DNA of 64,000 bases from Paragordius varius (Eukaryota; Animalia; Nematomorpha): positions 682,001 through 746,000 of the forward strand of contig OZ176059.1 in the NCBI GenBank assembly GCA_964247055.1. The letters are read 5' to 3'. The notes under the pieces were generated by a model that was given only the letters and a program-made list of their open reading frames with translations, did not search any database and was not told where the DNA came from. Position numbers and translations under genes: made by a program. Positions 9,601-57,888 of this stretch are shown piece by piece (position 1 is the stretch's first letter; the number at the start of each line of letters is the position of its first letter).

Positions 9601-12600
9601 ATTTGTGTTATTAATATATATTTCTTTATCATCATTTGCCATTTTGAACAATGAGTTATATACATGTATATATATATATATAAGAAAATTGAAATTTAAC
9701 AATTATCATTGTCTTTTGTAGAAAAAAATATTTGTCTTTATATTTTTTTACGTTTTGTCCGTATAGTTTCTTCAATTTTTACGGTATTTTTACTGATTTT
9801 AGCAAACACCATTCCAACTAACCTGGTTCAAATTAAACCCTAGAGATGGAACTGGGTATACATCTCTACCAGCGCATAGATCTGAAGACCGTATCGGTGT
9901 ACTAAAGATAAGGGATGTTCAACCCTCAGATACGGGTCTGTATGCTTGTCAAGCGACTGATGGACGTCAAAGGCTAGAAGCACATGCTAAACTTGAAGTT
10001 AATCGAGGTATAAATATAACGAAAAAATGTAGATTTATGCGGTTAAAATAAAATTATAAAGACAAAATATAAAAATAAGGGACATATAAGCCAATTTTAA
10101 AGAGAACTGGTATTCAAAATTATGTACAGTAACACGGAAAATAGATTTATTTATACACGGTAAAAATTTATTTATATAAAGAACAATGGATATATAAAAG
10201 AAGGAATTTTACAATTTTTTTTTAAAATAGAACCATATTTTCAAAACTTTCATTTTCCATAGTATTGCACCTTTTGTTTTGGATTTAGTATATAGACAAT
10301 TAAATTGGTAATTAATCTATTTTATATTTTTCAAACGTAATCTCATGGGTTATGTAAAAAAAATCAAGGATCAAAAATTTTTAGTTTATATGTTGTCTTC
10401 CTAATTTTAATTGTCACTCTATTATCCAAATTTAATTATTTTTTTTATAATTATTCTAGACATCGTTAAATTTATGAATATAAAATACGTATTAAATTTA
10501 TTAGGATATTCAACTACAATGAGCACTATAAGTAGTGGTGGTGGTGGTGGTGGTGTACCTAAAATCCATATTTTTCCAACGCTAATTAATGCCAAACAGG
10601 GGGAAACTGTTTCATTCGATTGCAAATATGGTCATTCATCTGCAACATCATCTCCGAGCAATACACGTATCCAGTGGTATAAACACAATGGGGCATTACC
10701 ACCCCGAAATTCTGTAATATATTTATTTAGATTGCAATAATAGATTATCCCGTTTATTTTTGAATAAGAGAATTTTAATAATGTTTTATAATGTTTTTTT
10801 TGCTAAATAAACAGATTCAAAACTCCAAGTTAACATTGGAGGCCTTAACACCATCCGATTCAGGACTGTATGTTTGTGAAGTTTATAGCCCATATGGTCA
10901 TTATAGAGCCACGGCCCGTTTATTGGTTGATTTTAATAGAGGTAGTTGGTTAATTTATATGACATTTTTTTTATAAAATTAAGAAGTTATTGTTGTATTA
11001 CAAAACTAAAATGTATCCATATATATATATACACAAAAACATGATTATGCAAATAGTGGCACATTTTCAACCATTATTATACACTGTCTTAATTAAGATT
11101 ATCCATTATTCCTGACAATATTTGAAGTGGATATTACTGAGAAAATAAATTAGAATGAATTATTAACCTTCCTGTAGATATATCTCATTTTTTAAGGATT
11201 AATATCTATCCCCACCGCCAGCGCTTGCTTATTTCATAATACTACCATAAAAAAATTATATTACATAAACTGAATTATATTAAATTAAATAATATTAAGT
11301 ATTTTAAATTTCGTATTTTAAATCCTTTTTACGTGTACTACTTTGTGTTTTTGCCTTAAAAAGAACACAGTCCAAGGATACATGCCGGTTCACCCGATAA
11401 CACTTGGATTCGATCCCGTGATCAACATCACCTAAGACCAATGGTCGTAAGGCATACTACACCCCTACTTTACTCATCTACATCCCCTTCATTGTATCCA
11501 AGGTTTATATCACCTTACCTACAAACTATAACTATGCCACACCGTATTCTTAACAACGAATATAGTAATAATAATAATAGACAACAACAAAGTGGTAATG
11601 AGAACAATGGTCAAGAATATTTATACAGTTTGCAACCTAAGATAACTACTTTGACGGAATTGATTGATACCATAAGCACTAGCACGACACCCTATGGACA
11701 AATGTTGAAAAATGAACAAATGTACGTTTATCATTCATTAAAATAGTTTTACTACTGCCTTTATCATTTAAACTCCTATGAGATCAGCTATTAATGTTTT
11801 AAAAATCAATTTAAACTATAAAATTGTTGCCTGGAATTACACAATTAAGATTTAGAATTTGTTTTGGTATTTTTACCCTTTTTCTGTTTTTTATTCTTAA
11901 CTTATATTAATTTTCCATTAACAGTGAAAGAACAGAAATGGTAAATATTGGTAAAACGATATACATCCTATTACATTTTTCAGAAACTCAAAATTAAATT
12001 GAAAGCTCTAAGGTTAAACCGCAAGTTTAAAGATGAATTTAAAATTGTTTAAATTTTTAAGGCTGAATCGGGATGAAGGGCCAGATTTAAATTTTCGAGT
12101 GTGTGGATAACAAATATTAGTAAATGAAAGGTCTATGTTGCTATACCTACTACTACTATTATTTAGGCATCCATTGGAGAATAAAGACGTATCTCTAACT
12201 TTATTAGCGCCGAGCCATAGAGTTATCACAACAATCTCTAACGATATAATTGGTGGTGAATATCATGACAAAGAAGCGCTAATTTTAACCAATCGTAATG
12301 AGAATGAAACAAATTTTTTTACAACACCTTTAACACCCATCCAATCTGTTACATATACACCTATGGTTCAAATTAACCCACAAGATTTAATGCTAACCCC
12401 AGGATCCACTGCCCTCCTAAACTGCCAAGTCAGAGGCAATCCAATCCCAGTTATGCAGTGGATTAGGGCAGATGGAAGTCCGATTCGATCTTCACACCAG
12501 GTTTTTTTTCAAACGAATTGCTATGAAATGTTTTGTAGAATTTAACAATTATTTTTAATCGCATATATACCATTTACAATTCAAGTTTACCCTCAAATAA

Positions 12601-27292: not shown

Positions 27293-27300
27293 TATATAAA
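27293..27300 (+). promoter_or_regulatory. Candidate TATA box of the collagen gene
   Basis: TATATAAA 45 bp upstream of ATG 27345. The background is AT-rich, so support is weak. Confidence 0.4.
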
Positions 27301-27344: not shown

Positions 27345-30300
27345 ATGACTGGTTCAAGTGGACTCGGTGTAAGCAAGTTAAACATCTTCTTTTGTTTAAC
27401 GTGCTTTGCAGTGGTTTTTGTGACATGTCTTTTTGTACTTCCATCATTCTACAGTCAACTCAGTCAAATCCAATCGGAACAGGCTGAGCTGGTCTCATCT
27501 ATGATGACAAAACTCGAAAAACGACAAAAAGTTATTGATAAAATGCACCGAAAACTTGAGGAAATGAGGGTATTTTTTTCATACTTTTTTAAGGCTCATT
27601 TAAACGAGATCATTATAGAATATAATATATTTATCTGTTAAATTGCATATCATAAAAGAAAAATGGTTCTCTTTTATAGTAAAATTAAAATTCTGAAAAC
27701 TTTATCTTTTGAACCAACAAACTCAAATTATAAAAAACATTTTGTCAGTTAATAACAGTACATAATGACTAACATATACATAATTTAATATTACTTTCCA
27801 TCCATATAAAATGATTTAATCGTCTGTTTATGTTGAGATTAAAAATAATAAAAAAAAACAGTTGCTGTATTTCCCCATATAATAATATATTACGATAACA
27901 ATATAATATTTATTCAATATAATAGTTAAATACCAAATTCGATATAAATGATTGATTATTTATATACTGTAATATTTAGGACGAACGATACGAATCCAAG
28001 GTTAATGATTTGAAAACAAAATTATCAAAAGCCAGCGACAGCGTTGAAATGAAAAAACTTCAGCGACGTAGCAAACATCAACAAGTAATTTGAATTATTC
28101 TTCCACATTTTTATGAAAACAACTGTAATCATCAACTATGTGGAAAAAAATGTTAAAATGGATGAAATTATTTTTCAAAATGAAAGAAACTTTATAATTT
28201 ACAGTAAAATTTTATAAGGGGTAAGATTTAAAAAATCTAATTTTAAACTTAAAGAACCGGTTTTATAGTTAAAAATCTGTTAGTTGCTGTAAAGCATAAT
28301 TAAATTTACACGCATTAAGTTGACAGCTATTTACCTTACGATTTCCATTTTAGTTATTTATAATTTATTTAATTAGTTATCTGGCGGTCGTACCAAACGT
28401 CACACTTTCATCCAAGCTGATACCGGCTTGCCAGCCCCGCGTCCCATTGAACGTCCTATAAATGTAGGTGGTGGATCTTTCGGTGCATCAGGAGGACCAC
28501 TTCAAGGAGGTGCAGGTGCTGGTGAATTTGATGCTGGATCAGCTGGTTTCGGATCAGCCGGTTTCGGATCAGCTGGTGGTGCTGGTGCCGGTTTTGGTGC
28601 GGCTGGAGGTCGAGGTGCTGCCATCCGAGCCGGACTCGCCCGGGCTCGGGCTGGTGGAGCTGCAGGCTTTGGCGGCGCGAGAACTGGTGCTTTCCTTCAG
28701 GCCGTTAGTAGCCGAGCTGGTGGCTTCAGCGTACGACGCATTGAAGCTGGTCGTGACGATGCCCATTACCAACGATTAGCAGCTGAATTGGCCCGCACTG
28801 GTGGTGTCACGGAAGTTGGTGAGTGTCACAAAAATTCTTTTTTAACACAGTAATAAAATTCTTATTATTTGAAAATAGGTCCCTCCCAAAATTAACATAA
28901 CACCTAAATATTTATCATAATATATTTTAGATTGTGGATGCCCACATGGTAAAGATGGTGCTCCAGGTCTTCCCGGTCCACCCGGTAACAAAGGACGCCC
29001 AGCAGGCCCAGGTCTTGACGGAAAACCAGGAGAAAGAGGTCGTGATGGAGAACTTGGTGACGCTGGTTTAGATGGACCTCAAGTAAAATTTCTTATGCTT
29101 AATTATCTTATTGACATTTTGAAATAAGATGTTTCAATATTCATATTAAATCATATCTCGATTAATTTTGAAAGGGTCCACCAGGAGCTCCCGGTGCTCC
29201 AGGAAATGACGGACAACCAGGAAAACGAGGAGCTCCAGGACGCCCAGGCGCCCCTTCTATTCCAGGCAAAGATGGTCAACCAGGTGCTGATGGATTACCC
29301 GTATGTTTCTATAAATAATGATAAGTCATATAACGTTATATGCTTCTTGATAAAGTTTAAAATAAAAATTGTTAATAAACCAATTATGTGTTTATATCTG
29401 CCAAGCTTAAAATTGATATGTATTTTTACAGGGTCTACCCGGAACTGATGGTATTCCAGGTGCCGATGGAAATCCCGGTGCTGACGGTATTCCAGGCAAC
29501 GATGGTTTAGATGGTGCCCCAGGCAATCCCGGCAAAGCCGGAACCCCAGGTGCTAAGGGAAGTATTGGACCAAAGGGACCCGACGGACAAGCCGGCCAAC
29601 CAGGTCTAGATGGTCTTCCCGGAAATGATGGTGCTCCAGGTGCTCCAGGACGTGACGGAAACCCCGGGGCTAGTGTTTTGGCACCAGGTCCTCCAGGAGA
29701 CGCTGGCGCTCCTGGACGAGATGGTCAACCCGGTCGCCCAGGCTCAGATGGAAAACCCGGAAGAGATGGTTTCCCGGGTCGTGACGGAAACCCCGGACCA
29801 GATGGTAACCAAGGGCCCTCAGGTCCCCCTGGTCCAGATGGTAAACCAGGAGCACCCGGTAAAGATGGAGCACGTGGGAATGATGGACGCCCAGGAAATC
29901 CAGGGGCAGATGGTAAACCTGGAAATCCAGGACAAAAAGTAAATTTTAATTTTTAAAAAATAATATTTTGTTTATATTATATTGAATATTTTCCAACAAA
30001 ATCATACAGGGTTTCCCCGGACTCCCAGGTCTTGATGGTCAAAATGGTAATGCTGGAAATCCAGGTCGCGATGGTATTCCAGGGCGAGACGGTTTCCCTG
30101 GACAAGATGGTCGACCCGGAGAAGATGGCCAACCAGTAATTTTCATTTAATTTATTAATTTGAATAGAAAAGAGCCAATATTCCTTCTAAACATTAATAA
30201 ATGCTCTTTTTCTATCACTAGGGCAAAAATGGAGAACCAGGTCGCAATGGCAAAGATGGAACCCCAGGAGAACGTGGAGCTGATGGAAAACCAGGTGCCG

Positions 30301-31521
30301 CTGGAAATCCCGGATTCGATGGCAAAGCCGGAGAACCAGGTCGAGAAGGTGCAGCTGGTTTACCCGGAGATTCTGGAGCTCCAGGAGCCGATGGACGGCC
30401 CGGAGGAAAGGGACCAGATGGTGCCCCAGGTCCAAAGGGTGAATTGGGAGCTCCCGGCGAGCCCGGTCGTGATGGACGCCCTGGAAATGATGGGCGACCC
30501 GGTGCCGATGGTCAAATCGGTGGTCCAGGTCCACGTGGGGCCCCAGGTGAAGGTGGATTCCCCGGCAAAAATGGTGAAAAGGGAGCCGCAGGTGCTGCTG
30601 GTAGAGATGGTGAACCAGGAACTTCCGGAAATCCTGGACGAGATGGACCACCCGGTTCCCCAGGTGCTCCAGGAACATGCAAATCTGAATGCCGCGCTGA
30701 CACACGCATTATGTGTACGTACTTAAATTTGCGTGTCATTATATTATTAAAAAAATATAAAAATTTAATATTTATTAATGTCAATTTGTTATTTAGCTCT
30801 TTGCGGTGGCTCCGTTTACTATCATTGGGGTAGTAAAACTTGCGCTGACTCAAACTCACGCTCCAATATCATATTGAGTGGTTATATCGTAGGCGGTGCC
30901 TATGGAGATGACAGACCAGGAGGTGGTCACAATTATCTCTGTTTACCAGAAAATCCGGAACTCAAAGGGTATATATATATATATATATGCATATCCCTAA
31001 AGTGTAGCTTTGTATATTTGGTATTTTTTAATAATAAAATATTTATTACATAAATAAATTAAAAAAATATTGTTAATATACCCAGATTTATCCCAGGATT
31101 TTCTGGACCAGGAAATACACCCTTGTCCGGGTTGTACGGTGCTGAATACCGCATCCATGGTAAATCTAGTCCCTTCATCACACCCATCGGAGTACTCCAG
31201 GGTCAACAAGCCGTATGTGCTATTTGCTACACCTTCCACATGTGCGAACATGTCATGATTCCCGGACACAAGGAATGTCCCAAGAGCATGGTTAAGGAAT
31301 ACTCCGGTTATTTGATGGCTCTTAGCAATAAATTTTCACGATCTGAGTACATTTGTGTTGACCGAACCCCAGATGCCAGTTATGAGGGCGGTCGCCAAGG
31401 TGGTGCCCGTGGTGACATAAGCGGCAGTGCTCTTTTCATCGTAGAAGTTAAGTGCGGAGCTCTCCCGTGCTCTGCTTATCCCGATGGTCGTGAAATTGCT
31501 TGCGTTGTTTGCGGCAAATAA
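27345..31521 (+). CDS. Chimeric collagen, 927 aa: cuticle-collagen-type N-terminus + ~450-aa interrupted Gly-X-Y domain + spongin short-chain collagen (C4-like) NC1 domain
   Basis: Exons 27345-27569, 27980-28084, 28377-28818, 28931-29082, 29175-29300, 29432-29938, 30010-30135, 30222-30714, 30797-30968, 31086-31521 sum to 2784 nt (928 codons, no internal stop). [28 protein letters not shown]; GGRTKR; [13 protein letters not shown]; Gly-X-Y run; GTCKSEC; C-terminal [40 protein letters not shown]....[37 protein letters not shown]. Confidence 0.93.
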
Positions 31522-34948: not shown

Positions 34949-37660
34949 TCATAATCGCCCCTTAACTAAATAGGTGGCAACTTGACCCTTTCCCTTGGCA
35001 TAAACTTCGCCGCGGTATTCGAATTCGAAAAAATCTTGAAGCATGGGTACAACGTGAGCCGGAACCTAGGAATTTTATATATATACATATATATATATAT
35101 AAATATATAATAGTATATTTTATTAATTATACAGTTAGTAATAATTAAAATCATATTAAAAATAAAAAGTAAAAACTAAAATTATATTTCATTTTTAAGT
35201 CATAAGAAACGCTTTTTCAACCAAACGCGAGATTTTTGTTTAATAAAACGCAACATTATTTTCGATTGTCTTTGCATGAGTTGCGTTTGGTTGACAAAAT
35301 GTTGCATTTGTCTGAAAAATGGAATATTAAAACATAATAAAAAAATATATATTTTACAAAGATTATTAGGGTATTTTTTAAAATTTGATTAATATATAGT
35401 ATTGTTTCGGATTGCGAAATAATAGATGTGAATTGACAAAAACATTCAACTTTATTTCGAAATTACAATCATATCGGTTACATAGATGATATACAGTTTA
35501 TAATTCAAATTCACCCTAATAAATTATGTGTTTTCGGGTCCTAATACTCATCATAATTAATATGAAATACTTAATGGCATAGTTTTGTATTTTCAGTGTT
35601 TTAATTTAATAAAAAATATGGGTTATAATTTATAATCATAAAAAACACATATTGTTTGAATTGTAGTTAATATGAATTGCTTTGAAAGGTTGTATTTGAG
35701 GTGTAAATGGTATATCAAGGATTAAACATGTGCTTTTTAATATATAAATAATTTGTCTTTAAACTTTTTAGGTTTAGTTAATTTTAGGCATCAACAAAAT
35801 ATTATAATTTTTAGTTATCAATAAACTGTAGACAGTATACAAAAAAACAACTTTTCCATGTCCTAGTAAATAAATTATATAAATGATGATATAAACCAAT
35901 TACAGTTCAAATTCTTAAACAAATATTACCCTTGTACGATCCAAATTTCCCCTCAAATAAATTATATGTTTTTTAAGATTAAAAATTACCTATATTTTTT
36001 TATATTTTTAAAAGATGTAAAATTAATATAATACTGAAAAATAATAATCTATGCCATAAAAATATATTTCATATTAATAATGAGTTATATTAGCTGTCCA
36101 AAAACAATTAATTTATTTTTAGGGTGAATTTAAATTGTTCAAGGGTAAATTTGAATGTTCGAGGGTGAATTTGAATTGTAAATGGTATATTTACCAATTA
36201 AAATACCATTAAAATAAAATTTTAAACATGTATGAAACATTTGACTCATGTTAAGGGAATTACTTGTATTCGATTTGGGACACCAGTTGAATCCATTCGA
36301 GATGCAATGTTGACAGCGTCGCCCCATATGTCATAATATAATTTAGTGGTACCTTTAATAATGACAAATTATATTCGTATATAATAAAAAGAAATTATAT
36401 ACTACGGACAAAACGGAAATATATAAAAACAAATATTTTTTTTGCAAAGGAAAACGATACTTTTTTAATTTTGTTTTTGTTTCAATATAATTAACTCATT
36501 GTTTATATTGCAAAAGAGATAATAGTGATATATATAATTAGTGATACAATCAATTATATATTTTACAATTGGAGTCAAATAATTAACATAGGGAAAAATA
36601 AGGTTTCATAAAGTATTGTCTCTTTTAAAAAAAATGTCCTTATATTTTTACGCTTTGTCCGTATAATTATTTTACTGTATATTTTATAAGTTTTTCGAAT
36701 TTTATACCCAGTTAAAAACTAATTTTTAATGGACAAAAAAAGAATAAACAAATGGAAAGAGAAAAAAATTCGTTGTTTTAATATTATTATCAATATTTTT
36801 GTCTATAATATTCGAAAAAGCGATTGAAACGCTTTAAGTTAATATACATAAAACGTACATGCATGTCTAGAAAAATTAATTCAGTAAAAATTAGCGTTAT
36901 ATATATTTATATATAATTTAATCCGATATAAAAGATAAAAAAACTTAATTAGCAATTAAAACTATTTTATCCACACCTTAAAAACCGTACATTAGAATGA
37001 TGAAAAAATAGTTTGAGATATGCAATAGTTTGTATAAATTTTGATCATTCATTTTTTTAAATAAAAAAACATAAACGTCAGAGTTTATTCGATTCAATGT
37101 GCATGTGAATAAAATGTACCAATAACTCCGGCCGTTACATCACCCACATTATATCCTATCCGGAGGATAAAATTAAACTCCAACAAGTCACGATTAAAGT
37201 TATCCACAACGTTAAGCATATCAAATGCAAAATCCATCAATGAGATAAGGTGGGAATACTGTTCACGTTTATTCGTTAAACACACTTGTGGGCAAGATGG
37301 TGAGTTCCCTTGTATTGGTTCAAGCAGTTGATTATCCAACATATTTACGTTTTTTTCAACAATAACTTTGTTACTATCCGTATTGACTGTTGTACTGGGG
37401 GGAGGATAGCTGGGGGCATTATCGTTGGTTACTGTGTTGGCTGTGTTCAAGCCACCCGCTGCCATAAACGTACTCCCGATCGTTTTAATCTTTTCGATTT
37501 CACGGTATTCGGGTTTATCCAAGAGCTCATCGAAATCACCAATCACCTCATTCAGGACACGTAGGCACTCCTTACCGCCCTCAAAGCTTTCATCATACAA
37601 CTCATTGAAGTTAACTATGGTGGCAAATATGATACCGACATTCTTATGATTACGTGAGTA
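34949..37660 (-). other. Adenylate cyclase C2a catalytic domain (3 exons)
   Basis: [51 protein letters not shown]. Confidence 0.95.
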
Positions 37661-40600
37661 TTTGGATGTCTCCTTCAGCTGTTCCACCACATGTTTAGGT
37701 ATAATGTTGTGTAGCAACCATTCAGCTTGATTCTTATGCACCAATATGATTTCTTTATCCCGTTGAGCCCGATCACGGCCCTTGAAATTGAGTCGATAAT
37801 TTATCTCGAATTCACGGTTGAGTACTATAACGAGCAGTAGGATAAGTAAAACGCTTATAATCATTTCGATACAAAAGTTTGGGATACCAGTGGCCGATGC
37901 TGTGCGAGCCAAGTTAGATGATGTCCCAATAAATCCATCCTCCGTAATATGAAACACGGGGGCAGATCCATTAGCTAGTAATTAGTGGAGTAAAAATAGG
38001 TCGGTATGTTAAAAATATTTTTTCGTTTAAAAGCTTTAAAAAAAATCATTAAACATTTATACTTGCCCTATCAAACAAAACAAAGGAAAATTAGTTTAAT
38101 CCTCAATTAAAATATACCTTCGTGAGCGATTGTAAAACAACAATAAAAATTTGTGAAAAAAAAACGGTTGAATTAACCATGTCACAAATATATCATCTTA
38201 TACCTGTGTAACTAACAAATGATGTAGTGATTATGCAAGAAAATAGTTAACACAGCTATAAATTATTACTTGGTTGCATTTCAAAATTCATCAATTTTTA
38301 CATAACTCTCTTGCATAAATTATATAAGCAACATTTATTTACCAACCATTTACCTTTTCAAAATTTCGAGAAAAAAATTTCATAATGCATACTGTAATTG
38401 TGGGTGAGCAAAGGTGCAATCAATTGGGCCAAACTTGAATTGGGTGTAGTTTGAGCCGTTTCTGAGGCCCCAGCGGCCGCTAAAATGTTAAACAAATTTT
38501 TCATTGGGGCCGCTAAGCTATGGTTAAGGTAACCCGTGGTGGGTGTCAAATTATATGGTAGCATCATATTTTGATGATTACCGGTCCTTAAGCTACCAAA
38601 TAAAGTTGGGGAGGATGGTTGTTGGTTCGCACTTAGCGTATGATTGGAACTGCTTAGGTGATGATGGTGTCGTGCCGCCACATCACTTATACGGGTAAAG
38701 ACATTGTTAAAGCGTCTATCAGGCAGCGAAAAGTAGTAATACAAATGGGCCGCTAACGTTTTCCCCTGTTGCCTGGGATCCCGTAACAGGGTTATGAATT
38801 TTAGCGGCGGAGGTGGTAAGCAAAACTCTAAGCTAACGAACGTTATAATGACACCCGTAACAAGGAGTGAAAGTAGGGCCTTAATCCATGACAACAGTTG
38901 TACCAGATTGATAAGGTGTAACAAGCTAAGGGCCAACAAGAAATCATAGAATTGTGCTTCGGCAGCCCGGAGCGAAGGTGAGACCCGGAAGTAGGCTATG
39001 AGTAAGGAGGCGGCTGGTAGACTAGCTATGACAAGTCCAAAGACTTGTCGAACCCACCAACGGTTAAATATGTCCCGTGACTTTGCAAGCACGACCGTAG
39101 ATCGACGAGGCCCCGCCCCAGCCCCAAACGATGGCCCAGTGGCGGTAGCTGATGTGCCAGTCTGATAAAAGGGCACAGATGTCCGTGGTCTAGGGTTAAG
39201 CATTAGCGGTGATACGACCTCCCCTTCTTTTTCCTTATCTGAAGAGGCAGGTAGGGGCGGCTCATTGCTAATATTTGGCATTTCTTTGCTACTCTTACTT
39301 TTTTTCTGTTTGGGAAACATGAAAAAGTGTCGTAAACAAAAGTTCCAAGAATCGAAACGTAGCCCACAACACCGAAGCTTACACGGTACCTCGGCCGATC
39401 CAACGTAACAAATCACGCCAAACTCAAAGATGAGGGCAATGGCCCAAAAAGCCATGGTACCAGCATCCATGGGTCTTTCCAACAAGATTAGACAAGCTAC
39501 GTACATGAGTGCCAGGACGATAAAGCTTACACAAACCTCGGTAAACAGGGTAAAATTAGGTGATGAAAATGTGGTCATAGACAAAGCTAGCGCACTGGCT
39601 GAACTCTCTTCACTGCTTTGTGATGAGGTTGAAAGACTCGAGCATGTGCTCGAACTTGAGCTACTACAACTGCAACTTGATGACGATGAATGGCAATCAT
39701 TGGAGGGGAAAGAACATTGGCTATAGCTATTTAAAGTCTCCCCCTTCTTTACAATAGTATTGGTAATGTCAGGTGGTGTTAGAGTTAATTCCTTGGGATT
39801 TTTTACTTTTTTATTGGGCTTATCATTTTTCGTGATTGATGTTGTTGTAGATGGTGATGATAATTCTTCAGAGGTAGGTATGGGTATGTTGAGAGCCGGA
39901 GAGCTAAATATGTATATACAGTAAAATTATATTAATAAATATTGGTTTGCAACATGGAATTTAAATCTTTTGTAGTTAAAATATTTGCATTTTTTTAAAC
40001 AGAACAACGTATTGTTTAAAAGTTTTTTAATTTAACTTTTTTAGCAAACATGATATAAACAATAAACAATCCTTTCACATATACTACTTACTAACTACTT
40101 TTACAGCATATAATTTTGATTTTGTCTATTATATGATAACTTCTTTTAAACAAGATTTGAAAGGCGTAGAATTAAAAAATTTAAGTGATTATACAAAATT
40201 AAATACAGGGAAATAAACTGGAAAACTAAAAGTAATGTGTTATTAAGATGATAGAATTAAACCGTACCCAATTTTCTTGGGTGTGCCTTTAGTAGCCATA
40301 TCATCAGTCGAACTTTCATCAATGATGGGTATACTTTTGTGGGATCCCTCTAAGTAAGGTTTTATTCCAGGAGGTATCATGGCATTTGTATTATCTTGTA
40401 ATGGCTTATTATTATTGTTATTGGGTTTTACATCTATCGTATTCGATAGTGGTTTTTTAGTTTGTGTTTTTGTATCAATAACATCTTCACGTTCTTTCTT
40501 GTGCGATTTTGAACGGTGTCGCCGCTTTTCACTAAATATGTATGTGGTAATATAATGTCATAAGATAACTCTAAAATATGTATATACCATTTAAACTTCA

Positions 40601-50023: not shown

Positions 50024-53000
50024 TGTGTTATCTATGTTAATTAAATCTGTAATTTAACTTGTTATACAAATAGTAATAAGCCCCTCTAAAACTTTGCAAA
50101 GCCCATTAAAATATATTAATTTAAATAAATAATAAACCGTTAAAATCCATATACATACAGTAAAAATTAAAATTATAGGGGCAAAACATAAAAATATAAA
50201 GACAAATATTTTTTTAAAAAACACAAGTATACTTTTTCAATCTTAAACTTTTATAATATAAATCATAGTTTATAAATGAAAAAAATAAAATAGAGATGTA
50301 TATAGGTAACGCAATCAATTATATCGTTTAAAATTGTAAATAAATAATTTATATGGCAAAAATTTAGATTCAAAAAAATATGGTTATCTTTTAGTAAAAA
50401 AAAACATTTGTCTTTATATTTTTACACATTTTACCCATATAATCTCAATTATTACTGTATCAAAAAGATTTCAATTAATTTCAAAAATAATGGTATAAAA
50501 ATACCCTCCTTGGTATCATCCCCCGGTTCTACCACATACTTATCGCTCAGGGCATCTAACGTCGTTTGACTTATATGTACACGCCCAGGTTTACCCGTCG
50601 ATTCAAGCTTATTGGCAAGCGTGACATCGTTGGACCAAACGTCAAATTTAAACCGACGCGTTCCAACTACGCCACACAACACGGTGCCCGTGTGAATACC
50701 CACGCGCATATTAACGCTTTGATTATTGTCACGATCAAATTCTTTGATGGCACGAATCATACTAAGTCCCATACGGACACAACATATGGCATGATCGGCC
50801 CGGGGTTCCGGGCAACCCGAAACACAGTAATAGCAATCACCCAACGTAGCTATCTTCTCACATCCACATGCCTCACACAACTTATCGAATCGGCCAAACA
50901 GGTCATTGAGCAGGGCCACAAGCGTAGCAGCTGATTTATTACTACTCATTTGGGTGAAACCGACTATATCAGCAAACAGGATACTAACATTCGTGATTTT
51001 GTTCATTTTGAAGGGGCGAAACACAACGGGTGGTCTATTATTATTATTGTTACTGGTGACGCCTGCCCCAAAACCAGCTGATGATGTACCCGTTAAAGCG
51101 GATGACCCGACGACCCCAAACCCGCTCATAAACATGAAATCATCACCTGTACTGGCCGCTGGTGGCGGTGAACCGATTAGCGGTGATTGAGCTGGTTCAT
51201 CTTGCTGTTGGTGTGACGACGTTGTTGATGAATCATTCGAGGAAGATAGGGAATAATTATGATGGTGACAATGATGATGGTGGTGATGATGATGGCCATA
51301 TTCTTGGGATTTACTTGTATTAGCATTAGGGTTTAACGGATGCGAAGAATCGGTATGGTCTAAATAATAATAGTATATAAAATATAAAAAACGATATAAA
51401 AACAGCCATTATATATGGTTATGAATGGGTCTTTAAAATGTTTGCAAAACAGGGATTTAACAAATATGTATGATCAAGTGTAAATTTTTTTGTCTTCAAA
51501 TTATAATACATGGAAATAATTTAATCAAGAAAAAGCATTAAAATCTTAATTTCTATTAATTTTAACAAAATACATTTCCAAGACACATATAACTAATGAA
51601 TTGACTAGTTATTGTAAAGTATGTAAAATATGAGTAATACATTGCTAGAAAGTTATTAATTAGTGCCGAATAGAATACAAAGAGCAGTATTATTGGTATA
51701 TAGTTATTTTTTCACTTTTTACTAATATTAGCCAATTAAACTGCCTTTTGTTTCCTTATTTTGGCAATAATTAATAACTTTCTGGCAATGTATAATAACT
51801 CACTGTATTCACAGACCCATATAACTAATGAATTGGCTATTTATTGTAAATGTATGAGTAAGGATACATAACTAGTTTTATTTTTTAATTTAACATTGCT
51901 ATATAGCATTTATAGATAGGAAAGAGCAAACTATATTACGTATGAGTAAGTATACATTGCTAGAAAGTTATTAATTATTGCCAAATAGCATATAAAACAA
52001 AGGGATTTATTATTGGCTTATAGTTATTTTTTTCACTTTTTATTATTATTAGCCAATAATAATTCTCTTTGCTGCTGCATATGCTATTTGGCAACAAATA
52101 AATTTTTCTGGCAATATATACTTACTCAAACTGTATGGATAGGTAAAAAATAAAATTGATATAGTAAATTACATCACGGTTTAAATACTTAAATTTGATA
52201 AAGAAATATATATTCATATATACAGGATGAGTAAGTATACGTTGCTAGAAAGTTATTAATTATTGCCATAGCATATGCAGCTTTTTAATACAAAATACCA
52301 TGCAATAAACTCTTATATATTTTATATATCCATATTAAAGTATGTTCAATGGGTAAATCTTTTGACATCATCTATATATGTTCACAAATATTATTATATT
52401 GTTTTTACATTCCCCGAGACGATTTGATTAAACCAATGCGTAATGTAATAATAATAATTTTAATATAGTTATGAATAAAATGTTCCTTAAATACAAAAGT
52501 TAGCTGTTTCTTTCCATGAAAAAAAGGGACATATTTTAGTATCAGAAAAGAATATGTAACATTGTGATATACCATTTTTCAAACAAAAGCAACTTTTTTC
52601 AAATAACGCAACATTTACAAGCAAATGCCACAATTTTTTAAAACAAACGCAACTTTAACTCCGTTTAGATGAAAAATGTTGCGTTTGATCGAAATTTGGC
52701 TTTTGATTCAAAAATGGTATACTTTTAAATTCGATATATATACCTTGTAGGTGTGGTGAGTTGGGTATTTCCTTATCCCCATTCAATTCTTTACATTTAT
52801 TATTATGCTTATGCCTATTATGTCTTCGACTATTACAATCACTAGTATGTGAATGCGAATGCGAATGCTTGTGTTTATGATGTCCTCCTTTCCCTTGTTG
52901 CCTTCGTTTCAATGCTTCATCAGCTGTTCTCACAACAGATGGTAACGGCCCATCATTAAAAAGTGCCCCGACCCCAACAGCTGTTAGGGGTCGTCGGGTA

Positions 53001-56000: not shown

Positions 56001-57888
56001 GCTTATATACTACAGCAAAAGAGTCTTCATATCATTGGTTAAATAGTTGATTAGTTGGTGCTTAAAGAAAGAAATGTATGAATTGTGCAATAAAAGGATA
56101 CATCTTGAAAACAAACTCGCTAAGCACCGATAAAATGACTTTTTTCAACCAATAAAGGAAGCTCTTTACTGTATTTATTGACAATGAAAAACGTATGTTC
56201 CATTACATTTATTAATAATAATATGACTTCAAAAGATTTATATCTATAATACAATAAACATTAATGATGGTCAATTCACGTTATTTATGGTCAATAGGTG
56301 ATAGAGTAACGTATGATATAAAACATATTTCATCCATAGTTACATAAAATTTAATGATGTAAGATGGCAAAAAGATGTAATTTTAACCATTTATCCTTTT
56401 TTACCATATGTTTATGTATTGCCAATCGGCCAAAAATAATATGAATTGACCGACATGAATGTACATACTGTAAATAAAAATAAAATGTTTTACCAAGGCC
56501 CAAAGATGAATCCTATCCAGATGGGCTAATCGAACGGCCGACAAAGTTATAAATATGATACTGTATGATAGCGCAAGCCCTGCCGTAAATAACATTGGTG
56601 CATTGGTAAATGTGTATAACAAGACTATGACCTGTAACGAGGTGGCAAAATTTGCGAAATAACTTAGCGTAGCATCACTCCCGATTAACCGTTGATCGGT
56701 TGGCATAACGGGAACTGGACTAAGGATATAACCACCCCTAGGCCGTGAAAATGTAAAGAGACTGAGTACGCATATGGTTATGCTCCAAAACATGGAAAGC
56801 GTACCGTAATGACGATCAAAGACACGCGTAAACGTGGCAAAGAAGGAAGCAAATGCCAAAGCAAGCAAAAGGGATGAACCAATCAAAATTTGGATCCAAC
56901 GATTAGCATAGGCTACTGAACCCATGTAAGCACTCCATGTGGCAATGGATAAACTTACAAAGCATAGGGCTATACGGAATTGACGCTTAACCAATGGTAT
57001 GGAAGTTTTTTTGAGTTGCGTTTCAAGTATGTCCGAATCAAATCGCGGGTTCCACCAAGTCGGTGCGGCCCGTTCAAACAGTTGTGGAAGACGTGTCTGA
57101 CAACAGGGTTTGTTATGCCGCAACGATTTATGTGCCCGTTTATGCTTTTGATAATAATAATTGTCTGATACCTTTTTAAATTCGCCATTTTGAAGCAGAC
57201 GATTATGGCTTTTGTAATCAAAGGAGGAGGAAGAATTAATTTTGCTATAATCTTGGTTTAAGTTATGGTCAATTTTATTTCCAATCGTATTAGTTGTTGC
57301 AACCAAAGGCATTTTTAGTTCCTGTTCTATGGCATCCCTTGTTAATGGAGCTTTCTCATTCCTTTTTTCGGAAGAATAGGTAAAGGTTGAAGCTTTGTGA
57401 ACGGTCGGTAACGAATGTTGAGATTGCAAAGGTATATACTTATGTTTATCGCTAAAATTACGAGATTTTTTGGACTTACCCAAGGGCGATGATCGCCAAC
57501 GAAACCATTTAGCAGCCCAGGAACGGTTGTTACTATCTTCAAATCGTGCCGTTTTCTTTAGCACAGAATAATTTTCATTGCCACCAGGTGATTTTGGTGT
57601 CACGGGAGGTAACATATTATTGTCATTAAAAGATATACCTTTTTCATTTGATCTAGCGATAGGAGTAGAAGTAAGCCCACCATCTAGACTGGGAAGAAGG
57701 GTGTTTGCAAAAGATTTTGGGGCCGTAATAGTTGTCGTCGTATTATACGGTTTTTTATCATGTTCATCGCCCAAATGAACTATAGTATCCATAGCAGGCT
57801 GTTGGGCAATGTTTGTTGTTACATTAGTTGTTGAAATTGACATATTAGTGGTTGGTATTTTATTATCGGTGTTGTTAATGTTTGACAT
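34949..57888 (-). CDS. ADCY9: Adenylate cyclase type 9 orthologue (12-TM class III cyclase), ~2,464 aa
   Basis: Minus-strand exons 57888-56494, 55892-55673, 53148-52744, 51359-50505, 49453-49346, 47366-46960, 45593-45462, 44628-44391, 43886-43771, 41977-41541, 41142-40897, 40531-40268, 39903-38393, 37974-37120, 36352-36264, 35065-34949 (7395 nt, phases consistent). AC9-type motifs: [60 protein letters not shown]...[41 protein letters not shown]...[68 protein letters not shown]. Confidence 0.95.
35895..36189. mobile_element. MITE family A copy
   Basis: Family internal sequence; right end GAATTGTAAATGGTATA. Confidence 0.8.
40583..40830. mobile_element. MITE family A copy
   Basis: TATACCATTTAAAC ... 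AAATTGTAAATGGTAG. Confidence 0.8.
42121..43108. mobile_element. ~1-kb non-autonomous DNA transposon, TIR GGGTGGGGTGATAAAAA
   Basis: Perfect 17-bp terminal inverted repeat plus imperfect subterminal inverted GTGATAAAA/AAGTC blocks; no ORF. Confidence 0.75.
45651..45945. mobile_element. MITE family A copy, followed within a few bp by a family D copy
   Basis: TATACCATTTACAGC ... TTTAAATGGTATA. Confidence 0.8.
45950..46131. mobile_element. MITE family D (TIR CAGTATGCATTTTAATGGTTGCTTATTTCACACTATAG)
   Basis: Inverted ends; second copy 49702-49829, half copy ~55530-55568. Confidence 0.75.
46352..46520. mobile_element. MITE family C (TIR CAGTATGAGTAAGTATACATTGCTAGAAAGTTATTAATTATTGCCAAATAGCATA)
   Basis: TA-flanked palindromic element. 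Other copies ~51626-51805, ~51939-52133, 60265-60470; partial ~52223 and ~58838. Confidence 0.85.
46663..46866. mobile_element. MITE family F (TIR CAGTCATGTATATGTAGAATTG)
   Basis: ta|CAGTCATGTATATGTAGAATTGACAGA ... TCTGACAATTCTACACATACATGACTG|ta. Confidence 0.85.
47591..47894. mobile_element. MITE family A copy abutting a family B copy
   Basis: TATACCATTTACA ... CTGTAAATGGTATA. Confidence 0.85.
48005..48190 (+). ncRNA. Candidate RNase MRP RNA-like sequence (or a small TTAA-flanked MITE)
   Basis: GC-rich island with GTCTCCGGAC (48063-48072), TAGTTTCGAAGG (48134-48145) and CACACGGGG (48154-48162), in the order of human RMRP CR-I, CR-IV and CR-V as recalled; the core is short and P1/P2 pairing is unconvincing. 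Confidence 0.25.
50158..50457. mobile_element. MITE family B copy
   Basis: ta|CAGTAAAAATTAAAATTATA ... TATAATCTCAATTATTACTG|ta. Confidence 0.8.
50505..51010 (-). other. Adenylate cyclase C1a catalytic domain
   Basis: FADIVGFT and TLGDCY metal-binding aspartates; MRVGIHTG; FDVWSNDV. Confidence 0.95.
52568..52721. mobile_element. MITE family A3 (TIR TATACCATTTTTCAAACAAAAGC; internal AACGCAAC/GTTGCGTT)
   Basis: Complete copy; partial copies ~7180-7317, ~35205-35325, ~43635-43746. Confidence 0.75.
53177..53716. repeat. Tandem array of three ~176-186-bp units (flank + left arm of MITE-A), running into a complete MITE-A at 53751-54128
   Basis: Unit starts AAAACAGAAATTTATACC at 53177, 53363, 53541 and (diverged) 53717. 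Confidence 0.85.
54504..54796. mobile_element. hAT (Charlie-like) MITE
   Basis: Ends ..GTGGTTCCCAAC / GTTGGAAACTACTG; near-identical 8-bp flanks CCTTAAAG / CCTTAAGG. Confidence 0.7.

Follow-up and report, generated by a model that had tools for sequence, protein, structure and literature searches.

A stretch of 64,000 nucleotides (nt) from the genome of the nematomorph Paragordius varius (assembly GCA_964247055.1, contig OZ176059.1, positions 682,001 to 746,000 of the forward strand), here called the window, was analyzed for a collagen gene on its plus strand at window positions 27345-31521. We conclude, with a probability of about 75%, that this gene encodes a type II anchored pro-collagen of the spongin/short-chain collagen C4-like family, in a long-helix form so far found only in Nematomorpha. 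The original prediction, which was made from the letters alone, had described a chimera in which a nematode cuticle collagen was fused to a spongin short-chain NC1 domain. Every feature listed in it, including all the NC1 motifs that it quoted, was recovered at its place in the sequence, and the gene was confirmed as real, with its splicing being predicted from genomic DNA.

Three-frame translation together with inspection of the boundaries yielded one open frame of 892 amino acids (aa) distributed over nine exons, with all introns being of the GT-AG type and consistent in phase. The exons of the region are conspicuous at 45-53% GC in a genome of ~25% GC. The start ATG at 27345 is the first after an in-frame stop ending at 27299, and 30714/30797 and 30968/31086 are the sole phase-compatible GT-AG pairs at those two junctions. 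The predicted exons and features are listed below.

27345..27569, + strand: exon 1, aa 1-75, predicted cytoplasmic stub of 11 aa, anchor and amphipathic stalk; donor GTATTT
27378-27443, + strand: signal anchor or transmembrane segment, aa 12-33 (22 residues), ending VLPSFYSQL; hydropathy-based
aa 34-75, + strand: helical stalk, amphipathic, with a weak heptad pattern
28377..28818, + strand: exon 2, aa 76-222, RTKR and a Gly/Ala-rich low-complexity linker; phase-1 donor GTGAGT
28389-28400, + strand: RTKR furin-type site, aa 80-83; sequence motif
28931..29082, + strand: exon 3, aa 223-273 (51 aa), D-CGC knot and start of the triple helix; Pfam Collagen, 29.3 bits
aa 224-226, + strand: CGC, directly before the helix
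29175..29300, + strand: exon 4, aa 274-315, Gly-X-Y with a GAPSIPG break
29432..29938, + strand: exon 5, aa 316-484, Gly-X-Y with a GASVLAPG break; Pfam Collagen, E 6.7e-29
30010..30135, + strand: exon 6, aa 485-526, Gly-X-Y
30222..30714, + strand: exon 7, aa 527-690, helix end, G-T-C-KSE-C (C679, C683) and a short linker; phase-1 donor GTACGT; Pfam Collagen, E 3.3e-25
30797..30968, + strand: exon 8, aa 691-747, first part of the spongin-type NC1
31086..31521, + strand: exon 9, aa 748-892 and the stop, remainder of the NC1

The mean Kyte-Doolittle hydropathy of the anchor reaches 2.87 over 19 aa, and the stalk, which stands beside the type II anchor and the furin-type motif, is hydrophobic at 8 of 12 a/d heptad positions, a weak pattern. 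Exon 2 matched no family in a Pfam search; its linker contains 36 glycines and 30 alanines in 139 aa and holds a 15-nt tandem repeat (GSAGF, 2.8 copies, 28536-28577), and its donor falls within the codon just before the first cysteine. The Gly-X-Y region (aa 229-679, ~451 aa) has three short breaks, GRP-AGP-G, GAPSIPG and GASVLAPG, and helix exons 3, 5 and 7 match Pfam Collagen. Immediately after the helix stands the motif G-T-C-x3-C (GTCKSEC, aa 677-683), and the 209 residues following its cysteine pair include a C-terminal domain of 203 aa with twelve cysteines.

This C-terminal domain is a spongin/short-chain collagen C4-like NC1, more distantly homologous to the NC1 of collagen IV. With exon 9 as the query, an exhaustive phmmer search of 1.84 billion representative sequences returned 1618 matches with E≤1e-3, of which 587 had E≤1e-10 and none exceeded 46% identity; the best 150 of the 1618 were inspected. 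The joined domain of exons 8 and 9 aligned over positions 4-203 with >160 homologous domains, nearly all of which were C-terminal in their proteins, and the matches sampled from Branchiostoma, Ptychodera, Lingula, Liolophura, Ruditapes, Tegillarca, Owenia and Desmophyllum were named "short-chain collagen C4-like" or uncharacterized. In an alignment of 71 NC1 sequences, cysteine was conserved in ten columns, without exception in seven and almost so in three, which fits the published count for the spongin NC1 of seven cysteines in common with collagen IV plus three that are spongin specific (PMC5395295). The P. varius domain keeps all ten family cysteines and 26 of the 30 conserved columns of this alignment, and has two extra cysteines.

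Searched singly, exons 8 and 9 matched no Pfam family and no PDB sequence; with the profile of the 71-sequence alignment, the four best PDB matches were all collagen IV NC1 chains (E 0.02-0.2). Structure searches were made with an AlphaFold (AF2) model of the NC1 of a homologue from the nematomorph Gordionus (predicted local distance difference test, 90.7). The first 41 PDB matches of this model were collagen IV NC1 (E from 2e-4; template modelling [TM] score, 0.40-0.45), its top Swiss-Prot match was short-chain collagen C4 of Ephydatia muelleri (P18503; E 1.2e-6), and clusters named "Short-chain collagen C4" in the AFDB were matched at TM scores of 0.8-0.89. The spongin half of the original prediction is therefore upheld by the 587 strong matches, the ten cysteines and the named relatives, and the structural comparison, as done on the Gordionus homologue, agrees with it, with P18503 as the best match and collagen IV NC1 coming next.

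Two observations on the wider NC1 family were made in addition. The two best-scoring NC1 matches were giant proteins of 3949 and 3827 aa, with seven to ten tandem spongin-type NC1s and without a long Gly-X-Y run. Furthermore, a transcriptome entry of the protist Ancoracysta twista in EukProt (931 aa) carries three copies of the animal-type NC1, which probably represents contamination from prey or a co-cultured animal.

Among the best 150 of the 1618 NC1 matches, the long architecture was found only in two proteins of Gordionus sp. m RMFG-2023 (Nematomorpha), the gene models of which were predicted with RNA-seq support (10.1101/2023.06.26.546503). One of them (CAK9291962.1/XP_065316944.1), annotated as "uncharacterized protein LOC135925505," comprises a transmembrane segment, a stalk, RSKR, CQC, 261 aa of Gly-X-Y, G-V-C-x3-C and an NC1, while the other (CAK9300014.1/XP_065318950.1), annotated as "collagen alpha-2(IV) chain-like," has 441 aa of Gly-X-Y. 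In the NC1 tree, a quick tree with long branches, the P. varius domain fell into one clade with both Gordionus NC1s (Shimodaira-Hasegawa-like approximate likelihood ratio test, 92), in keeping with a placement in Nematomorpha. Moreover, the phase-1 intron that interrupts the codon ahead of the first prehelical cysteine recurs at the same position and in the same phase in the Gordionus gene, the exon that follows it (the first collagen exon) measures 51 aa in both species, and both have a phase-1 intron at the border between helix and NC1, two codons apart. The Gordionus genome is likewise AT rich (26.9% GC). No flanking gene in common with the Gordionus locus was found when microsynteny was compared, which, together with an NC1 identity of 39-44%, suggests that the genes are probably paralogues or that the genera are distant.

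Further homologue searches returned little: the Gordionus NC1 matched itself alone, the P. varius helix end gave no match, and the matches to the Gordionus helix were dominated by MARCO, ColQ and bacterial collagens, with no nematode cuticle collagen among them. Of the generic matches to the helix of this Gordionus homologue MARCO ranked first, a likeness that is compositional only. Some irregularities were seen in the Gordionus models themselves. On OX940783.2, the RefSeq isoform XP_065316944.1 (887 aa) exits the NC1 ahead of its final strands and runs on for ~200 aa of low complexity, and the ENA model CAK9291962.1 (686 aa) finishes with a complete NC1; the former looks like a mis-spliced 3' end. 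A third Gordionus collagen of 428 aa, on the contig of CAK9300014.1, combines an anchor (CVSLIPIFYYHL) with a C-x2-C knot and a Gly-X-Y region of 207 aa and ends "...GEDGTTVYFTIYL"; apparently this is one more member of the family with its model cut short, the NC1 exons having been missed.

The anchor, stalk and furin-type site of the P. varius protein are ancestral traits of a pan-metazoan membrane-anchored spongin branch and were not borrowed from nematode cuticle collagens. A signal anchor and a helical stalk were present at the N-terminus in many of the best 150 NC1 matches, and named anchored members came from the coral Desmophyllum, the annelid Owenia (with two such genes), a bivalve, amphioxus (with several), a hemichordate and the three chelicerates Centruroides, Tachypleus and Nymphon. 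The motif R-x-[KR]-R, which follows the stalk and precedes the Gly-X-Y or NC1, was present or adjoining in 16 of the 17 anchored members listed, a set spanning coral, annelid, bivalve, amphioxus, scorpion, horseshoe crab and sea spider; Ptychodera alone was without it. The full order of anchor, stalk, furin site, Gly-X-Y and NC1 was found in amphioxus (XP_066279564.1), Owenia and a coral. This layout, shared from coral to amphioxus, indicates that an old design has been kept in P. varius and that the protein is no chimera. In part, then, the architecture is already common among annotated invertebrate collagens, with the combination of anchor, stalk, furin site and NC1 being widespread. Two traits set the nematomorph members apart from the others compared: a Gly-X-Y length of 261-451 aa versus 42-87 aa in the named others, and cysteine knots at both ends of the helix, which only they possess. 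We do not class the P. varius protein as a plain family member because of this difference in helix length (451 versus 42-87 aa).

The chelicerate proteins (Centruroides, Tachypleus and Nymphon) are anchored and have a furin-type site and a spongin-type NC1, with no Gly-X-Y, and the Nymphon protein contains three matched NC1 stretches. The original prediction referred to a reported loss of the spongin family in Ecdysozoa, and the family is indeed stated to be absent from this group (PMC5395295). The spongin-type NC1 is nevertheless present in Ecdysozoa, namely, in P. varius, in Gordionus and in the chelicerate proteins.

The likeness of the predicted protein to nematode cuticle collagens is one of layout only. 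As a reference set for the latter, environmental contigs (metagenome and metatranscriptome) were fetched by the peptide ICPKYCA, a nematode-specific collagen peptide (PMC12375989); fifty of them encode cuticle collagens, all of which close with the nearly invariant tail ICPKYCA[LI]DGGVFFEDGTRR. Open reading frames (ORFs) of 217-337 aa, mostly ~300 aa, were obtained from 48 of the 50, and the complete ones begin KAYRFVAYSAV...TLPMVYNYV...NRTARQ...CxxCC. Two candidate traces of homology to these proteins were tried and rejected. The match to Col_cuticle_N (PF01484), borderline in score, could not be reproduced as true homology with profiles of real nematode sequences, and the nematode tail DGGVFFEDG, considered as what might be left of the NC1's first strand (GGSVYYHWG), scored no better than shuffles with a position-specific scoring matrix of 141 NC1 starts (p 0.2-0.3).

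A different history, in which nematode cuticle collagens descend from anchored spongin-types and the nematomorph form is the state before NC1 loss and helix shortening, is unlikely in our judgment, although several features speak for it. Nematomorpha are the accepted sister group of Nematoda, the layout is common to both, and the motif G-X-C-x3-C of P. varius and CAK9291962.1 has its counterpart in the G-I-C-PKY-C of 48-50 environmental nematode collagens. In addition, Col_cuticle_N was the top Pfam match both of P. varius exon 1 (21.3 bits, E 3e-4) and of one Gordionus paralogue (14.8 bits). The former score is, however, below the 23.5-bit cut-off and the match spans profile positions 3-31 of 50, that is, the anchor and the LP-x-FY motif only; the latter is also below the cut-off, and two other Gordionus N-termini matched nothing. 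Both scores lie within or near the noise of the anchors of other-phylum family members, which gave unrelated Pfam matches of up to 17.8 bits and, in two cases, weak Col_cuticle_N matches too. A hidden Markov model built from 39 nematode N-termini gave P. varius 6.6 bits, less than amphioxus (9.4 and 8.4) or a clam (7.2), and hhalign against the nematode N-termini gave probabilities of 16% for four nematomorph sequences, 63% for an annelid/chelicerate/bivalve set and 0.7% for deuterostomes. An Atlas language-model search with exon 1 returned only generic type II membrane and coiled-coil proteins.

The helix composition is also strongly different. In P. varius, Asp occupies 27% of Y positions and GxDGxPG occurs 21 times per 100 triplets (7-15 in Gordionus), so that the helix resembles those of Gordionus and of the amphioxus spongin-likes, whereas in the nematode cuticle collagen helices Asp makes up 8% of Y positions and Pro 36% of X positions. 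Finally, no nematode protein with a spongin-type NC1 was seen among the best 150 of the 1618 matches, and the nematode tail, as noted above, holds no detectable NC1 remnant. The cuticle-collagen half of the original prediction is not supported as a chimera reading: its N-terminal match is below threshold, the nematode profiles show no preference for it over other-phylum controls, the helix is spongin-like in composition, and the anchor, stalk and furin site that were taken as cuticle-collagen marks occur in cnidarian, annelid, bivalve, amphioxus and chelicerate spongin-types. What stands is the layout itself, with the anchor, furin-type site and cysteine brackets being present, while sequence homology at the N-terminus is not supported.

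A lineage-specific fusion, in which exon shuffling within nematomorphs joined a cuticle-type collagen gene to spongin NC1 exons, is highly improbable: the phase-1 intron at the helix/NC1 border in P. varius and Gordionus would permit such shuffling, and the long helix and cysteine knots are restricted to nematomorph members, but the full order exists already in amphioxus, Owenia and coral and, without Gly-X-Y, in chelicerates, so that no fusion is needed, and the helix composition is spongin-like. We give just as little credence to an artefact of the gene model, whereby the collagen would end after C-x3-C through read-through of intron 7 and exons 8-9 would belong to a separate NC1-only gene or a minor isoform; the helix-NC1 junction is predicted from genomic DNA, read-through of the 30714 donor gives a 47-aa tail with a stop at 30833 (ORF 30444-30833), an in-frame ATG lies ahead of exon 8 at 30778, and NC1-only proteins occur in the spongin family, but the 82-nt gap between exons 7 and 8 is too small to accommodate a promoter together with a signal peptide, both splice sites fit the consensus and match in phase, the alignment of the joined NC1 begins at its first strand, and two independently annotated, RNA-seq-supported Gordionus genes unite helix and NC1 (10.1101/2023.06.26.546503). 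As an observation in its own right, when the 30714 donor is left unused the frame runs 40 more codons to 30833, outlining an NC1-less product resembling a cuticle collagen, possibly an intron-retention isoform.

For the anchored spongin-type pro-collagen that we favor, a mechanism may be drawn from collagen IV, the membrane collagens (XIII, XVII and MARCO) and the processing of nematode cuticle collagens. The chain would insert as a type II protein with its N-terminus in the cytoplasm, and the trimer would be registered by the membrane-proximal stalk, by the NC1 as in collagen IV, or by both. Interchain disulfides at C224/C226 and C679/C683 would lock the trimer, a furin-type convertase would cut after RTKR and shed the ectodomain, and the NC1 would then drive end-to-end or network assembly in the extracellular matrix, plausibly the fibrous nematomorph cuticle. 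Several points weigh against this reading as a whole. The splice junctions, expression, tissue and shedding are predictions drawn from genomic sequence, and the trimerization roles of stalk and NC1, the furin cleavage and the cuticle location are extrapolated from what other families of collagens do. Moreover, the modelled structure is that of the Gordionus homologue (39% identity over the aligned helix end and NC1, 44% over exon 9) rather than that of the P. varius protein, neither NC1 exon matched Pfam C4 (PF01413) at E≤1, and the link to collagen IV is remote, with TM scores of only 0.40-0.45 as given above.

Public sequencing runs were also searched for the gene. Runs labelled as other organisms hold 9-38% of its 31-mers, for which close relatives, infected hosts or mislabelled samples are possible sources, and in three further runs the share is 0.36-0.44, with RNA and low-coverage DNA being indistinguishable. 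The same-species runs labelled as RNA are tiny and hold none of these 31-mers.

Elsewhere in the window, a multi-exon gene on the minus strand (37094-57888) contains two class III cyclase catalytic domains and is probably a membrane adenylate cyclase; two large ORFs within it, 38358-39584 and 56401-57888, matched no family in a Pfam search. An exon-sized ORF on the plus strand (12135-12545) has an immunoglobulin I-set domain (E 1.2e-7). The two cyclase domains are as follows.

37094-37954, - strand: Guanylate_cyc, Pfam E 1.2e-25
50452-51132, - strand: Guanylate_cyc, Pfam E 1.5e-60

Relatives of the P. varius gene were already present, unnamed, in the Gordionus annotation, and our literature search found no paper describing them. 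Nor did this search find any description of an anchored, furin-site-bearing spongin branch, or anything relevant to the collagens of nematomorphs or to how cuticle collagens originated. The present analysis brings out this branch from coral to amphioxus, and, given the nematomorph and chelicerate members, the loss of spongin-types in Ecdysozoa stated in reviews (PMC5395295) reflects the sampling of the fly and C. elegans only. The long, disulfide-bracketed nematomorph form is an obvious candidate for the little-studied cuticle collagens of Nematomorpha, and the P. varius gene offers a testable starting point for the origin of those of nematodes. It is conceivable, if doubtful, that the nematomorph cuticle is built from an expanded set of anchored, furin-shed, cysteine-knotted spongin-types, a surviving ancestor-like state, with nematode cuticle collagens having been derived from it through NC1 loss and helix shortening; were this true, the nematode family would gain a defined parent family reaching back to cnidarians.

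The predicted protein can be set beside several known systems. The vertebrate membrane collagens XIII/XXIII/XXV, XVII and MARCO are type II proteins with a juxtamembrane coiled-coil stalk, an interrupted helix and furin shedding. The P. varius protein, which would function in a similar manner, has a predicted anchor, an interrupted helix and a furin-type motif, with a weak heptad pattern in its stalk, but their noncollagenous domains are not homologous to its own, and they are without an NC1 of the C4/spongin type. Collagen IV (PF01413; PDB 1LI1, 1M3D and 8TYS) is alike in the remote homology and fold of the NC1, which would be expected to serve chain registration and end-to-end association; the P. 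varius protein differs in having ten rather than twelve conserved cysteines, in lacking a Pfam C4 match, a 7S domain and a helix of ~1400 aa, and in being membrane anchored.

Nematode cuticle collagens (e.g., the DPY-13 type with the ICPKYCA tail) are alike in that (L/V)P-x-(F/V)-Y comes after the anchor, a furin-type site precedes the helix, cysteines bracket the helix, with the last one in front of it lying three residues ahead of the first Gly, and G-X-C-x3-C marks where the helix ends. They differ in being ~300 aa long, with ~150 aa of Pro-rich Gly-X-Y (~50 triplets) and a stop 14-16 residues after the cysteine pair, and in having no NC1. The furin site and cysteine brackets typical of them are both found in P. 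varius, but the furin site is general to anchored spongin-likes.

The spongin short-chain/C4-like family (E. muelleri P18503, Branchiostoma lanceolatum XP_066279564.1, Ptychodera flava XP_070535345.1 and Owenia fusiformis CAH1793933.1) matches the P. varius protein in its homologous NC1, with the same ten cysteines and fold, placed directly after the helix, and the anchored members share in addition the anchor, the stalk, the furin-type site and a helix rich in Gly-x-Asp-Gly-x-Pro; their helices, however, are 40-90 aa long versus 451 aa in P. varius, and the C-x-C and G-x-C-x3-C brackets are lacking. The Gordionus proteins differ in an NC1 just 39-44% identical to that of P. varius, in NC1 introns unlike in number and place, in having no Gly/Ala-rich linker and, in one paralogue, in a cytoplasmic domain of ~285 aa, yet they combine, in the same order as in P. 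varius, a type II anchor, a stalk, R-x-K-R, a cysteine knot, a long interrupted Gly-X-Y region, a posthelical cysteine pair and a spongin-type NC1.

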